Origin: Guillardia theta CCMP2712
Taxonomy: Eukaryota; Protista; Cryptophyta
Assembly: GCF_000315625.1 (NCBI RefSeq)
Contig: NW_005434460.1
Coordinates: forward strand, 5,217 to 69,216
DNA: 64,000 nt
Reading direction: 5' to 3'
A program made the translations under genes and the position numbers. Within the stretch, counting starts at the first letter, position 1. The number at the start of each line of letters is the position of its first letter. Positions 2,795 to 7,712 of this stretch are shown piece by piece. A model generated the notes under the pieces. The model saw nothing but the letters and a program-made list of their open reading frames with translations. It searched no databases and had not been told where the DNA came from.

Positions 2795-3806
2795 CGTCAC
2801 CAGTACCGGCTGACTGCGTGCGGCGCACGGCCCCGGGTAGTAACTTTTAGTCATCGGAGTTGACTCAGCATCAGCAGCGGCCCGGGGGCCGCTTGCCGCT
2901 TTACTCAGTGACCAGCCTCCGTTGACACTTCTATCACTAATCATAGTACCGTCACCGGGCCGGGGCGGCCGCCCGAGCAGCCTCTCACTGACCGTACAGA
3001 AACCGTCGCCGTACCGCCCGGCCGATCGGACGGTACCGGGTGACCGCGGCCGCCCGGCCGGGACCGTTCGTCTCAGCCTCAGGCTCAGTGAGCCGCGGGC
3101 GCGGCCCCACCTGAGCTTCGAAGTTTGAGCCTAGGCCGCCGCGGCCCCGGGCCAGAATATTCAAGCCTAGTAGTATCACTGATGATGTGACATGATGGGC
3201 CCCGGCCCCCGGAGTTCAGTCCGAGTTGTTACTCAGTCGGTCGTTTGTAACCGTTGCCAACGATTTCTTACATCAAATAACGGATGTAACGACATCTATC
3301 TCATCTGGTTACACCACATAACGGATGTAACGACGCCTATCTCAGTCATAGTGACATCGGTTACACTGTAACCGCAGCCAAAAAGGACAAACTTTTTTTA
3401 TTTAAAATCAGTTTTAGCCGTTACTTTACTCAATCCCATGGTCAGGTACTAAAATGCATGCGAGTCCATGGCGAGGGGAGGAGGGAGGAGGGAGGAGCTA
3501 CAAGCATGGGCGGGATTGGGGGCTGGGCTGAGCATGAGGATGGTCAGGAGGAGATACGAGAGGAGAGGAGAAGCTGAGATTAGGAGGAGATGAAGGAATG
3601 GAAAGGGATGACGAAAGAGATTTATGGCCGTTCGGGTGGCCAACATGCCTTGCCTCTTGAAATCTCTGACATGTTGCTGCACAGAAGAGCTGCAGGAGTG
3701 GTTGTTTTCCCGTGATGGTCGCTGGCAGGAATGTGTAGCATATAATTCTCGCCGGAAATCTTTCTTGTCGACTTGAGGAATCGCTGGGTATGTTGAGACA
3801 GGGCAG

Positions 3807-5864
3807 GTGCTAGTCGCTGGGAGGATGAAGATGAGTGCGATAGGAGGAAATCCTGCAAAGAATCGCAGGATCAGCCTGAAACATGTCGAGACTGTACCGC
3901 GCGTTGCGAATCGATGCTTTCGTGATCGTTGCGTCGCCATCCGCGACTACATGCGGCTGCTGGCCAGGCAGGGAAGAAATTTCGACCATCAGCTGAGGGA
4001 TTACGATGCGAATATGCACAGAGCAGCGGATTCCTCCGTCTTCTTCTGCTCGCGCCCCATTCAAACGGCGCTGAGCCGGAAGGTTTTCAACATCCTCCTC
4101 ATCTGCCTTTCCGCCATGTACCTCTCCATCACTGCGGCATGGGCGAGGAGGGTCGCGACGGGGGGCAGCCACAAGTTGCGGTGCTTCCGCTTCTCTTGCT
4201 TCGAGCTTCGCGATGGAAGCAGGTGCAACGGGCGTGTGAGCCTGCAGAGAGTTGGGATCCTGCACTACGAGAGCAGCGCCGAGCATGACGAGGCCGGGGT
4301 TGGCCCTACACTGGCGGAGGAGGGGTGGGGCAACTGCACGATAGACTTGAAGTTCCCCAAGCCCGTGAAGATGAACGGCTTCTTCTTCGTCACAGCGAGC
4401 GGGAGAGGCACAGAGAGCGAGGACCCGGTTCGCTTCCTGCTGGAGGGCTCGCAGTGCGACGGCAGGTGGAAGGTGGTTGGAGCGTCGGCATGGCGATATG
4501 ACTGGCTGAAGACGAAGAGCGAGGACTTGAGCGTGTATCGCTTCTGGAATGGCCGGTACAACACAACCAAGTCTCGAGGAGAGATGGAAGTTCTGTCGTT
4601 CCACACACCAGGGTTGGAGACGCTCCTCATCGTGCTGCTAAATCTCTTTAGGACCCTGCTGCTCGGCGTTCCCGCCATGTTCGGTCTGCTGAAGAGGGAG
4701 GAGCAGGGTAAGAAAGCGATCCAGGTTGGAATCCTCTGCCTGGTCGCCAACTTGCTGGCCTTGCTGTGCGTTGACGAGGAGAATCGGCTGGGAATGATGA
4801 CCAATGTCATTCTCTCTCTCAGCTTCTTCCTCTCCCTCCGCTACTTCGAAGACGAGACTCTCTTCTGGCTCTCTGCCTTGGTTATCTTCGGCTCCTGGTG
4901 CGTGCTCGGCTACATGATCGCTTACACCGCAATCTTCCGCGTTGGCCTGCTCGTCTCTCTCTCCAGCACGTGCGTGCTGCTGTACAGGGACCATGTGCTG
5001 TCCACGAGCTGGAACCTGGTCAACTTCGACAGGGCGAGGTATGAGGAAGGATGGAGACTCTTCCTCTCGCGCCTGGAGCAGGAGGAGGAGGTGAAGCAGC
5101 TCTCCAACTACCTCCGTCACATCGTCGGGAACGCGTCGATCCACAGCCTGCAGGCGGGGATGGTCATGCGGCGGTGGTTGAAGAAGAAGTCGTTTTCTGA
5201 TCTACTTCAGATGCGATTCTCCTCTTCTGTGTCTGATGGGGTGATGCAAGTCGACAGGGATGGAGTTCCGGTCCAATCGCTCCATCGCCTCTACTCGCAG
5301 GCTGTTTGCCTGCAGGTAGTCCTTGCGGAGAAGGTGAGGTGGTGGGCGTCGCAATCTAGAGGATACTTTGTGGTTCAGGATCAGGAGGGGAGGAACGCGT
5401 TCATAACTTGTGAGGAGGCGCTTGCTCTGCAAGACTCATCTCCGACTTCTTCGAGTATCATCCCCCTCAAGTCCATCAGCAGAACCATCGAGAAGGTGGC
5501 GCGAAGTTACGGAGGAGAAGTTTGCCGCGTCCTTGACATCTCCCGCGCTCGGATTGTGTTCGACGACATCGAGGGAGTCTCGAGATGCTTGTCAATCATC
5601 AAGAATGACAGAGACGTTGAAATCCTGCGACTCAAGGGGAGGATGGCGCAGGATCAGCGGGCAGACTGCGAGGAGAGCGACGGAGACAGCTTCGGTAGGA
5701 GGGACCTGATGATGAACATCTGCATCAGGAACGAAGAGACAATCTGCCTTGGGGTCGAGAACCACATCGCCGAGGTTCAATTGCAAGTCATCACGCTCGC
5801 TGCCCTCCAGACGAGCGAAGCGCATTCCCGTTACCTCGCAGTGAGAAACTTGAGGAGGGAATGA
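3807..5864 (+). CDS. Multi-pass membrane protein with putative extracellular discoidin/galactose-binding-like domain and C-terminal RelA/SpoT-like nucleotidyltransferase domain
   Basis: 685-aa ORF. One TM (VFNILLICLSAMYLSITAAW), then a domain with DPVRFLLEGS...W, then about 5 hydrophobic segments, then KSISRTIEK...DISRARIV...RLKGR...GRRDLMMN...HIAEVQL, matching RelA/SpoT synthetase motif order. Upstream exons are possible. Confidence 0.75.
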   Translation: MLVAGRMKMSAIGGNPAKNRRISLKHVETVPRVANRCFRDRCVAIRDYMRLLARQGRNFDHQLRDYDANMHRAADSSVFFCSRPIQTALSRKVFNILLICLSAMYLSITAAWARRVATGGSHKLRCFRFSCFELRDGSRCNGRVSLQRVGILHYESSAEHDEAGVGPTLAEEGWGNCTIDLKFPKPVKMNGFFFVTASGRGTESEDPVRFLLEGSQCDGRWKVVGASAWRYDWLKTKSEDLSVYRFWNGRYNTTKSRGEMEVLSFHTPGLETLLIVLLNLFRTLLLGVPAMFGLLKREEQGKKAIQVGILCLVANLLALLCVDEENRLGMMTNVILSLSFFLSLRYFEDETLFWLSALVIFGSWCVLGYMIAYTAIFRVGLLVSLSSTCVLLYRDHVLSTSWNLVNFDRARYEEGWRLFLSRLEQEEEVKQLSNYLRHIVGNASIHSLQAGMVMRRWLKKKSFSDLLQMRFSSSVSDGVMQVDRDGVPVQSLHRLYSQAVCLQVVLAEKVRWWASQSRGYFVVQDQEGRNAFITCEEALALQDSSPTSSSIIPLKSISRTIEKVARSYGGEVCRVLDISRARIVFDDIEGVSRCLSIIKNDRDVEILRLKGRMAQDQRADCEESDGDSFGRRDLMMNICIRNEETICLGVENHIAEVQLQVITLAALQTSEAHSRYLAVRNLRRE

Positions 5865-6391
5865 AGCTTTCCCTTACCCATCTCCTTGATTCTCCATCTT
5901 CGTCTATCCTTTACCAGATTCTCGTCGCCTGTGGCCTTCACAGTCCTCCTCCTCCTCCTCCTCCTCCTCCTCCTCCTCCTCCTCCTCCTCCTCCTCCTCC
6001 TCTCTCAGCTCGCTCAGCGCACGCGTCAAGACTCAGCCCGACGGCGATCATTCAGGAAGGAAGCCCTGAGAGCAAAGCAAGACTTACTGGCTCGCGAGCG
6101 ACAAGGCACAAGACATTTCAAGAGTAAGGGGGCTGATCAGACTGATGGCCTGCTAGAAGTATCTTGTCTTTACTTTCAAATGGTCCTGAACTACTAGACG
6201 TCAACCATAATGCGTAGAAAGCAAAGTAGCACGCAAAAGACGTAGAGCAGTCCAGCCAGAGATCACTGTACTTCTACGACTGCCACTTTACCAAGGGCTG
6301 CGTCATCGAAAACTTTTGTTGTAGCAACCTGCAGGTGAAGTCAAATCCCCACCCTCCATGAAGTGCTGGCAAATATCTTCCTCCTCTCGCT

Positions 6392-7712
6392 TCATGGCGT
6401 CCACACGCCGAAGTGCTCTCGCCAGTCTCGCTGCTTGCTCGTGGATGTGCTGAAGAACCCGATGTGCTCTATCAGGTTCGGCACCACCAGGTACGTCGGT
6501 AGCTCAGAAGCCTCCAGCTGTTTTCCTACCAGCACGTCTACAGGTTCCACGGGCTTGGTCAAGTTTGCGGCCTCCTCCAGCAGAGCCCGGCGAAGAGGCT
6601 CGACCACCTGGCGGGGGAAGAGGATGCCAACATTGGAGGCAGCGGGGGATGGGGAAACGAGCGCGTGCGCGAGGACGAGAGGCTTGCGCAGCTGGATCCA
6701 GTAGGGCCTGCCTATGGCAACGGCGACGAAGCTGATGGCGACGGCAAGGACGAAGGAGCCGAGGAGTCTGTCGCACAAGGAGCATTTCCTGAGGCGAGAG
6801 CGGCAGGCAAGGAGCAGGACGAAGCTCAGCAGGCCCGACAGGATGGAGATGAAGAAGATCTCATGGATCACGTCCAATCCGAAGCCCATCCACTCCTCCT
6901 TCATGAAGAGCTTGACCATGCCGAACCTCCGACGCGTCTCCAGCAGAGAGCCCAGGACATATCGCAAGACCTTGAGGATGAGGGAGCTGCAGAGAGCGTC
7001 GTCCTCCATCATCACACAGTAGGTGGCTCTAGAGCCCTCGCAGTCTCGCAGGAAGTTGGCGTAGTCAAGGATCTGATGTCTCAGGTACTCGTCGCTGCTC
7101 GCGGGGTCTGTCCTGTTGAAGGTGTGGTTCTTCACCGGGACAAACTCCGACAGAGTCTCGAGCTGGGCGGTGAAGTTGCCGAAGCTCGCAACTGCGAGGG
7201 AAGCGTTGTTGTCCTGCAGGAGTATCGGAAGGAGCTTGACTACCGTCCGAGACAGGTAGAGGTACCTATCTCGCTGCTCCGATGACCGCGTCATGATCAG
7301 GAACAGGAACTCGACGCAAGTGCTTGACGACAGTCTCCTCAGGATCTGACTCGCGTTGCTGCGCATGCCTGAGAGCAGGGCTCGTGTCCTACGAGCTTGC
7401 TCGCCCTGTATGGCGATCAGCAGCTCCTTGCTGTTACGATCGGAGTCGAAGAGCGGCGAATGGCCGAGGTCCTGCCAGAGGGTCAGTAGGAGGCTGCGAG
7501 CTGCGAGTACATGGACGAGAGTGGCTGACCTTGCTGATGGAATAGACCACCGACATCAAGAGCACGTAAAGCAGACTGAATCGAACAAGCGCCCTCGCAT
7601 GCTTGTTGATCTTACTGTTTGTCAACCTCGATGAGACTTTGATTGCGACAACTTTCCCGGAGATCTTATGGAACGAGATGGAGGGCAGCATCAGTTGTTG
7701 GGAGGAAGGCAT
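6392..7712 (-). CDS. PGAP4/TMEM246-like glycosyltransferase (GT-A fold with inserted TM pair)
   Basis: QILDYANFL, VMMEDDAL, VKLF..EEWMGF, two internal TMs, PNLIEHIGFFS. A 58-nt intron at about 7472-7529 joins the 7434..7712 ORF (N-terminal TM) to the 6392..7366 frame. Confidence 0.7.

Follow-up and report, generated by a model that had tools for sequence, protein, structure and literature searches.

Can a eukaryotic cell carry an alarmone-type synthetase as the inner half of a membrane receptor? The question is raised by a gene in a stretch of 64,000 nucleotides of the Guillardia theta CCMP2712 genome (contig NW_005434460.1), here called the window, for which a sequence-only reading had proposed a receptor-like membrane protein ending in a RelA/SpoT-type domain. 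Alarmones of the (p)ppGpp type are regarded as bacterial and plastid signals. Their presence in the eukaryotic cytosol is debated, and we know of no synthetase there. For animals, the absence of an obvious synthetase has been noted in a review (PMC10107265). In the literature searched, membrane-bound RSH synthetases of eukaryotes are not described.

The gene is real, transcribed in Guillardia theta and selectively constrained. It lies at 3831-5864 on the forward strand and is a single exon encoding 677 amino acids and a TGA stop. The open frame claimed at 3807-5864 was recovered when it was re-derived from the window, and its extent stands, but the GTG listed as its start came from the bacterial code of the ORF tool and is replaced by the ATG at 3831 or the ATG at 3825. 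The product from ATG 3831 is exactly the deposited NCBI/JGI model of Guillardia theta and is also present in UniRef. The evidence for expression is a transcriptome-derived (MMETSP) protein of 679 amino acids, counted from ATG 3825 and 100% identical to the window protein. A collinear metagenomic contig with 97% identity has indels only outside 3831-5864, and shows ATA at the position of the 3825 ATG. The Hanusia phi orthologue is full-length and 68% identical to the window protein. The dN/dS ratio is 0.13 for the whole gene, 0.07 for the RelA/SpoT-like domain, indicating purifying selection, and 0.04 for the cytosolic helical linker. A pseudogene reading was rejected because of the dN/dS of 0.13, the intact ORF and the presence of a transcript.

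The protein is built up in the order basic N-terminal tail, TM1, CBM32/discoidin-like beta-sandwich, five TM helices, a long helix that carries on from TM6 and a C-terminal domain of the small-alarmone-synthetase fold. The corresponding features, with the evidence for each, are as follows.

3831..5864, + strand, complete CDS (NCBI/JGI/UniRef model match, MMETSP protein, collinear metagenome contig, dN/dS)
3831..4079, + strand, N-terminal tail of 83 amino acids, predicted cytosolic (16 K+R versus 7 D+E)
4080..4160, + strand, TM1, signal-anchor helix (Kyte-Doolittle peak 2.0; helix in the AF2 model)
4170..4598, + strand, beta-sandwich domain, CBM32 / F5/8-type-C-like, predicted extracytoplasmic (all-beta in AF2; profile match)
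4611..4997, + strand, five-helix membrane block TM2-TM6 (hydropathy; AF2 helices at model residues 210-338)
4998..5264, + strand, helical linker continuing from TM6, predicted cytosolic (AF2 model)
5265..5861, + strand, RelA/SpoT-homologue synthetase-like (small-alarmone-synthetase-fold) domain of about 200 amino acids (AF2, Foldseek, VIA, profiles)

In its AF2 model (pLDDT 90.3), the C-terminal domain has the fold of a RelA/SpoT-homologue synthetase, or small alarmone synthetase, and the RelA/SpoT-type nucleotidyltransferase fold anticipated from the motifs is thus borne out. All of the best 50 Foldseek matches are RSH synthetases. In the VIA ranking, RSH entries hold ranks 1-26, with Z from 13.7 to 8.1 for 25 of the RSH structures, among them RelQ (5ded, Z 13.7, rmsd 2.6 A over 145 residues) and RelP (6fgk, Z 12.8); the next matches are Pol lambda/mu at Z of about 6, which leaves a clear gap to other nucleotidyltransferases. 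The HMM comparison that had been suggested gave a divided answer: with Pfam PF04607 RelA_SpoT the domain alone reached E 1.6e-4 in an alignment spanning model positions 3-108 of 113, but its 22.3 bits are below the cut-off of 27. The whole window protein gave a sub-threshold 18.6 bits, and RelA_SpoT was found in 16 of 111 family domains at E <= 0.01. An NCBIfam scan of the window protein assigned it to no family and a single-sequence search against PDB sequences gave no match; a profile of the 111 family sequences matched Tas1 (E 3e-5) and RelP (YwaC, E 3e-3) in PDB. The domain is larger than proposed, because the conserved part begins at about 5265 and not at 5463, and includes an N-terminal helix and a hairpin. 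A chance occurrence of the motifs was rejected, as fold, profile and family conservation all speak against it.

Among the structures compared, RelQ/SAS1 and RelP/SAS2 (5ded, 6fgk, 6ewz) have the same fold as the window domain across some 150 residues, with Z 12-14 and an rmsd of 2.6-3.2 A. They also have in common with it a basic donor helix, an Asp for Mg2+, a G-x-R loop, an ExQ strand and an H-x2-Y motif. However, sequence identity is only 15-19%, the window family has D-x-x-R where RelP has D-x-x-G-x-R, and the guanine-stacking Tyr is replaced by Arg in the window protein. RelQ and RelP are small soluble synthetases that act as oligomers (tetramers), whereas the window domain belongs to a eukaryotic protein and is joined to a membrane module of six helices.

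The active-site motifs occur in the order in which they had been reported, namely K555/R559/K563/R566, D577/R580/R582, G630-R-R-D, E656-V-Q-L and H673-x2-Y676. Residue numbers follow the ORF from 3807 and were checked by translating the coordinates.

5469..5504, + strand, donor (ATP) basic helix K555-x3-R559-x3-K563-x2-R566, KSISRTIEKVAR (family conservation)
5535..5552, + strand, predicted Mg2+-binding Asp motif D577-I-S-R580-A-R582 (family alignment; start of a beta-strand in the model)
5694..5705, + strand, G-loop G630-R631-R632-D633 (family column counts)
5772..5783, + strand, predicted catalytic Glu strand E656-V-Q-L (strand 180-187 of the model)
5823..5834, + strand, C-terminal H673-x2-Y676 motif (H 105/111, Y 104/111)

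Conservation in the family is high at these positions. In the donor helix, K555 and K563 are found in 111/111 sequences, R559 in 108/111 and R566 in 96/111. The proposed check on the catalytic acidic residues gave D577 in 111/111 and E656 in 110/111, with R580 in 110/111 and Q658 in 96/111; R559, R566, R580, G630, R632, E656, Q658, H673 and Y676 are all 85-99% conserved over the 111 domains. In the alignments, D577 falls on the D of DIaGvR in YwaC and on that of D..aR in Tas1, and the donor-helix spacing equals that of K66/S70/K74/R77 in FaRel2 (PMC11782079). Judged by these alignments, the ATP-donor site and the Mg2+/catalytic acidic residues are intact in the window protein.

The G-loop departs from the G-Y-R pattern in that the Tyr, which stacks on the acceptor base, is Arg (R631) in the window protein. 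This replacement had been remarked on correctly, and the remark can be sharpened: Tyr is the family norm (93 of 111 domains, with F in 11 and R in 3) and Arg marks one small clade, in which it is conserved. The Arg is common to the Hanusia orthologue and to the Guillardia theta paralogues P0002 and P0003, and the four Arg-type proteins form a single small cryptophyte clade (SH support 0.94). Because it is common to a supported clade whose members are 39-68% identical to each other, the Arg does not look like decay. A second replacement concerns the KNR motif of the family, whose conserved Asn is Gly611 here. Both this and the G-loop change are among the 6 columns, out of 38 with strong conservation, at which the window protein does not follow the consensus. 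Since the Arg is conserved in the window protein and its three closest relatives, the acceptor or the acceptor affinity would be expected to differ from that of the Tyr-type paralogues and of the GDP/GTP-using enzymes. The Arg-for-Tyr clade may be regarded as a natural experiment on the acceptor specificity of the RSH fold.

Hydropathy and the AF2 model agree on the membrane part as it had been described, with one TM helix, a beta-sandwich with DPVRFLLEGSQCDGRW and about five further TMs. An N-terminal signal peptide is absent, and the first hydrophobic stretch starts at CDS residue 84. TM1 comprises ORF residues 92-118 and TM2-TM6 comprise residues 269-397; in the model, TM6 extends unbroken as a long helix into the linker and is followed by a second helix. 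The loop between TM2 and TM3 is basic (KREEQGKK, inside) and that between TM3 and TM4 acidic (DEEN, outside), which fits an N-in/C-in topology. Six TM helices and the positive-inside rule, that is hydropathy and charge only, agree with the placement given earlier: the beta-sandwich is predicted to face outside and the C-terminal domain to lie in the cytosol. The sequons and Cys residues of the sandwich speak for the same orientation. The N-terminal tail contains a juxtamembrane motif, HR..DSSVFFCSRP, which shows no change between the window protein, the metagenome homologue and P0002. Neither the tail nor the helical linker has a match in Pfam, and the N-terminal model has no Foldseek match in PDB at E <= 0.001. 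The helix bundle was also considered as a relative of a known channel or receptor. This was rejected, as a wide VIA search gave only generic helical-bundle matches (ORAI, NuoK and BAR domains) with Z 8-10, below a meaningful level for helical proteins.

The beta-sandwich of about 145 amino acids (ORF residues 122-264) contains 5 Cys and two N-x-S/T sequons (N168 and N244 in CDS numbering). Its pLDDT in the AF2 model is about 95, with most blocks at 89-97 and one loop falling to 62-72. Its relation to F5/8-type-C/CBM32 domains had been put forward as a point to check, and the kinship was found at the profile level but not with Pfam F5_F8_type_C, which has no match in the window protein and matched 1 of 30 family members at E 0.065. 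The family profile of the sandwich (A5) matches both CBM32 domains of the GH92 enzyme in PDB 7nsn (E 1e-7; domain limits from PMC10167667). The similarity to these NnGH92 modules, which are beta-sandwiches of comparable size, centres on D-P-x-x-[WF]-x-L-x-G-S-x-D-G-x-x-W and does not extend beyond profile positions 46-102, which form a single strand-loop region. The structural matches are weak, with Foldseek E of about 0.5 for neuropilin b1 and CBM32 and 0.18 for 7nsn, and one VIA match, to BT0290, at Z 7.5.

The window gene is one of many. A count of paralogues, as had been called for, gave at least 112 matches to the synthetase-like domain in the Guillardia theta genome, many of them in open frames with two modules, and paralogues also occur as 12-TM chains with two catalytic domains. 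Sandwich, bundle and enzyme domain form one conserved module that recurs in dozens of paralogues and also in tandemly duplicated form. Pfam found no match at all in P0002, nor any at one low-scoring locus (C4). All named family members that were found are from cryptophytes, and the cluster look-ups otherwise returned mostly unnamed metagenome proteins. Family members in ciliates and diatoms are hinted at in the Atlas by 2-3 records, which were not relied on.

The plant and algal long RSH enzymes (RSH1-4) have a synthetase fold of the same superfamily. They carry an HD_4 hydrolase domain, are targeted to plastids and are soluble (in part after PMC10107265). By contrast, the window protein has no HD_4 in Pfam, no N-terminal targeting signal and six TM helices; its N-terminal stretch of 83 residues, hydrophilic and basic, leads into a TM anchor, which is not the pattern of a plastid-targeted protein. 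Guillardia theta has two canonical long RSH genes, on C47 and C24, which carry HD_4 and RelA_SpoT, unlike the window protein, and a six-frame search of the genome found HD_4 in these two genes only. A cytosolic alarmone would therefore be left without an obvious RSH-type degrading enzyme.

The reading that we prefer, at a probability of about one half, is that of a receptor-type pyrophosphokinase with an outward sandwich sensor, a cytosolic enzyme of the synthetase fold and a non-canonical acceptor. The sandwich, facing outward or into a lumen, would bind a ligand, probably a glycan, and the binding would be signalled to the cytosolic domain by way of the helix bundle and the helix that continues TM6. 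This domain would then move the beta-gamma pyrophosphate of ATP onto the 3'-OH of an acceptor. The outcome would resemble in its logic the receptor guanylyl cyclases and the half-size (6-TM) class III adenylyl cyclases, in which a sensor and helices are likewise coupled to a cytosolic nucleotide-transforming domain. The resemblance is one of analogy only, as the window protein has no cyclase-fold domain and no Pfam cyclase match.

The changed G-loop bears on whether there is an enzyme at all. RSH enzymes are routinely disabled by replacing this Tyr, be it only with Phe, and the Tyr-to-Phe exchange already impairs the accommodation of the acceptor (PMC11782079). The Arg may for this reason abolish nucleotide acceptor binding, and the Arg-type domain could then be a pseudoenzyme or regulatory subunit that binds ATP/Mg2+ and serves in nucleotide sensing or as a scaffold. 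It might pair with Tyr-type paralogues, as degenerate and active halves do in other signalling enzymes, and the oligomeric nature of small alarmone synthetases, the many paralogues with two modules per chain and the 6/38 deviating columns are in keeping with this. We nevertheless regard it as rather unlikely, because all donor-site and metal/catalytic residues are kept, which a pure scaffold would not need, and dN/dS in the domain is 0.07. Moreover, F-G-R-R-D is conserved between proteins that are only 39-47% identical, which suggests that the loop was selected for a new function and not that constraint was relaxed. A function without ligand gating concerns the other end of the protein: the sandwich would be a structural or glycan-tethering element in the lumen of an endomembrane compartment, and the C-terminal domain of this enzyme or anchor would be regulated from the cytosol only. 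The restriction of the CBM32 similarity to positions 46-102 would agree with such a role, but sandwich, bundle and enzyme domain have been kept together across dozens of paralogues and tandem duplications, and the unbroken TM6-linker helix is the usual design for transmembrane coupling, which makes this explanation very unlikely.

A further possibility is that the acceptor is a macromolecule. The enzyme could pyrophosphorylate an RNA 3' end (e.g. tRNA CCA) in the manner of CapRel, FaRel2 and PhRel2, or deplete ATP like Tas1, and the growth arrest that follows receptor activation would act in defence or in a self/non-self response with no diffusible messenger. Tas1 (6ox6), the (p)ppApp-synthesising type VI effector of Pseudomonas aeruginosa, is indeed the best sequence-level match of the family profile in PDB, with K-S-x-E-R-A-x-x-K...Y-x-G-D...D-x-x-R-x-x-I as a common pattern, including the Tas1-like D-x-x-R, and a structural Z of 10.9. 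The toxSAS proteins CapRel and FaRel2 (7ztb, 8pu4) share the fold (CapRel Z 11.4), and FaRel2 has an identical donor-helix spacing. A large, fast-diversifying receptor family is also typical of immune and recognition systems, and the six-frame HD_4 search showed no dedicated small hydrolase. On the other hand, the Tas1 sequence match spans only 44 residues, RelQ and RelP are structurally equal or higher (Z 12-14), and the G-loop Tyr is retained in the toxSAS that target tRNA and in most paralogues, in contrast to the window protein. Tas1 is moreover a bacterial toxin that is secreted and comes with an immunity protein, and the window protein is an integral membrane protein; CapRel and FaRel2 are tRNA pyrophosphokinases of toxin-antitoxin systems without a membrane or extracellular part. 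A macromolecular acceptor thus seems quite unlikely.

The receptor-type pyrophosphokinase can be extended, tentatively and with more doubt than confidence, to the family as a whole. Dozens of surface receptors in cryptophytes might drive cytosolic RSH-type pyrophosphokinases that make 3'-pyrophosphorylated nucleotides (ppGpp-, ppApp- or of a new kind) as second messengers in the eukaryotic cytosol, and the Arg-type clade would have a different product or acceptor than the Tyr-type majority. The window gene is nuclear-encoded, expressed and non-plastid, and appears to join an intact-looking synthetase active site to a membrane sensor, within an expansion of roughly a hundred domains in one alga. 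If the family is active, its members would be receptor enzymes of a new class, and a second messenger new to eukaryotes might come with them. The variant at the window locus is a single six-helix module with an Arg-type loop, and the small soluble domain would make the question of activity directly testable.

The gene is of the eukaryotic, monocistronic kind. Rfam gave no match over the whole window, and a convergent neighbour gene at 6392-7366 has a sub-threshold MGAT4-like match in Pfam.

Window 3831-5864 (+) is a genuine gene, expressed and under constraint, which encodes a membrane protein with six helices. An ORF scan finds a single frame without interruption at window 3807-5864 (+), in which GTG 3807 is a start under the bacterial code of the ORF tool only; residues are numbered here from that codon. 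The 677-amino-acid product from ATG 3831 is an exact match to the deposited NCBI/JGI/UniRef protein. A 679-amino-acid MMETSP transcriptome-derived protein, beginning at ATG 3825, has 100% identity, and the gene is therefore transcribed and its coding part intron-free. L001, a marine metagenome contig of 2.8 kb, runs collinear with the gene (protein identity 97%), has ATA in place of ATG at 3825, and differs from the window by indels that all lie outside 3831-5864. The dN/dS ratio between the two sequences is 0.13 overall; the linker (0.04) and the C-terminal domain (0.07) lie below that value and the N-tail (0.64) above it.

Hydropathy indicates one transmembrane segment at residues 93-113 followed by a hydrophobic block at 268-393. 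An AlphaFold model of residues 60-470, built with 46 homologous segments as input (mean pLDDT 86), resolves this part as follows:

Residues 92-118, TM1 helix
Residues 122-264, all-beta sandwich
Residues 269-397, five helices

In the model TM6 runs unbroken into a long cytosolic helix, which is followed by a second helix. The N-tail has 16 Lys and Arg against 7 Asp and Glu, the TM2-3 and TM3-4 loops read KREEQGKK and DEEN, and the sandwich contains five Cys and two N-x-S/T sequons. By the charge rule, this distribution fits a topology in which the N-terminus and C-terminus would be inside and the sandwich outside. A structure search with VIA gave no specific relative of the five-helix bundle.

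The sequence-only reading described the sandwich as F5/F8-like, which is reasonable with moderate support, but Pfam finds no domain in this region and a Foldseek search with the sandwich-bearing model gave nothing at E <= 0.001. With a profile of 30 sandwich sequences (A5), a single PDB protein is matched at E 1e-7: 7nsn, a GH92 mannosidase of five domains. The two matched stretches, residues 122-171 and 1212-1268, fall within the two CBM32 modules of this enzyme, at residues 86-222 and 1182-1316 (PMC10167667). Weak matches point in the same direction, with Foldseek (7nsn, neuropilin b1 and one CBM32) as well as with VIA (the BT0290 C-terminal domain, Z 7.5).

The C-terminal domain was proposed from the sequence to be a RelA/SpoT-type synthetase, and the predicted fold agrees. 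Pfam RelA_SpoT covers model positions 3-108 of 113 at 22.3 bits, which is below its 27-bit cut-off, and neither an NCBIfam scan nor a single-sequence search of PDB sequences gave a match. A profile of 111 family domains (A2) finds Tas1 (E 3e-5) and YwaC/RelP (E 3e-3) among PDB sequences. The structure model built on A2 has pLDDT 90.3 and pTM 0.87, and its best 50 Foldseek matches in the PDB are all RSH synthetases (RelQ, RelP, CapRel, Tas1, FaRel2, Rel and an exported Streptomyces enzyme). Re-alignment gives Z 13.7 for Bacillus subtilis SAS1 (rmsd 2.6 A over 145 residues), 12.8 for SAS2, 11.4 for CapRel, 10.9 for Tas1 and 8-11 for long Rel/RelA/SpoT. These are followed, at Z ~6, by DNA polymerases lambda and mu, a different fold class. 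On these results the RSH-type nucleotidyltransferase fold is as firmly established as prediction allows.

Conservation over the 111 domains, with window coordinates checked, bears out the expected catalytic Asp and Glu. K555, K563 and D577 are invariant, R580, R632 and E656 are each found in 110, R559 and G630 in 108, H673 in 105, Y676 in 104, and R566 and Q658 in 96. The spacing K-x3-R-x3-K-x2-R is identical to that of K66/S70/K74/R77 in FaRel2, which grip the ATP phosphates, while an Asp further downstream binds Mg2+ (PMC11782079). The predicted donor and metal sites are intact. Like Tas1, the family carries D-x-x-R at the place where RelP has D-x-x-G-x-R.

The window protein departs from one canonical element, the G-loop Tyr, whose replacement by Arg had already been remarked and holds: the loop reads G-R-R-D, in a column with Tyr in 93, Phe in 11 and Arg in 3 of the 111 domains. 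Most sampled paralogues retain G-Y-R-D. Arg is also found in the Hanusia phi orthologue (690 amino acids, 68% identical) and in the G. theta paralogues GUITHDRAFT_147320 (47% identity) and GUITHDRAFT_110926 (39%). The four Arg-bearing domains form one clade (SH-like support 0.94), which has Gly at 611 where the family keeps a conserved Asn. In RSH enzymes Tyr-to-Phe is the standard crippling substitution (PMC11782079) because this Tyr holds the acceptor base, and Arg is therefore a substantial substitution. That it has been kept under strong constraint favours an altered acceptor site over decay.

The protein may be a receptor with the sandwich outside and the RSH-like domain inside. It would sense a ligand, probably a glycan, and the helices would couple sensing to the enzyme domain, which would move pyrophosphate from ATP onto an acceptor other than that of the Tyr-type paralogues. 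A pseudoenzyme that still binds ATP but has lost acceptor binding is less likely, in view of the constraint on the Arg. A toxin-like output, RNA-directed or ATP-depleting, is somewhat less likely still, and a non-receptor role is the least probable of these alternatives.

With E <= 1e-3 as the limit, an exhaustive phmmer search of 1.8 billion representatives yielded 951 proteins, of which 389 reach E <= 1e-10; residues 487-685 are common to nearly all. Many proteins contain the complete module, from the tail and first TM through the sandwich and five further TM to the enzyme, and often it is doubled within one chain of 1,000-1,500 amino acids. Named relatives are all from cryptophytes (Guillardia, Hanusia, Cryptomonas, Hemiselmis and Proteomonas), one Hemiselmis entry being auto-named 'RelA/SpoT domain-containing protein', and the ciliate or diatom members hinted at in Atlas amount to a handful of records.

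The number of paralogues is large: a six-frame A2 search of the G. theta assembly (87,145,349 bases, 669 contigs) gives at least 112 domain matches, ~80 of them reaching E <= 1e-20, and a good number stand in pairs ~2.1 kb apart in the same open frame. Most high-scoring paralogues are two-domain frames (for example C30:526782-529490, C206:54295-57045 and C1:833989-842931), in which the entire six-helix module is duplicated in tandem, so that the chain has twelve helices and two enzyme domains; several of them form local clusters on these three contigs. A second tier of ~25 loci has weak A2 matches (E 1e-8 to 1e-11) at profile positions ~60-130 only, the donor helix and Asp motif, in open frames of 800-1,080 amino acids:

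C4:1071678-1071890, weak A2 match
C37:146496-151219, weak A2 match
C117:82745-89231, weak A2 match

RSH-like receptors of a more divergent type may be encoded here; the one locus sampled, on C4, has no Pfam match. Ordinary long RSH, with HD_4 followed by canonical RelA_SpoT, is found at two loci (C47:131263-132737 and C24:131220-132315), which presumably encode the long RSH enzymes of the plastid. The G. theta genome showed no other HD_4 and no stand-alone Mesh1-type hydrolase.

The 2011 RSH survey (PMC3153485) has no membrane forms, just single-domain synthetases of a few eukaryotes, divergent and unplaced. Eukaryotes are absent from the 2020 toxSAS survey, and a review of 2022 regards the RSH of eukaryotes as plastid enzymes and points out that animals have no obvious synthetase (PMC10107265). 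The literature search found no paper on this RSH-like membrane-protein family.

A 1,236-amino-acid two-domain member (P0010) on a 17.5-kb ENA metagenome scaffold, in gene-sparse DNA that is presumably eukaryotic, has Cys at the G-loop Tyr position of its first domain. It is near-unchanged on 15 metagenome contigs and adjoins a DUF8234 protein.

The convergent neighbour of the gene, window 6392-7366 (-), is a 324-amino-acid ORF with one hydrophobic segment, and its sole match is a sub-threshold MGAT4-like glycosyltransferase (E 0.009; 15.5 bits against a cut-off of 51.5). Upstream of the gene, at 3440-3600, lies a purine-rich low-complexity tract of GGAGG/GAGGAG type containing a 14-base indel relative to L001. 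Just 3' of the stop codon, at 5950-6010, a (CCT)n microsatellite yields poly-Pro or poly-Leu in spurious ORFs; in L001 it has ~29 bases fewer.
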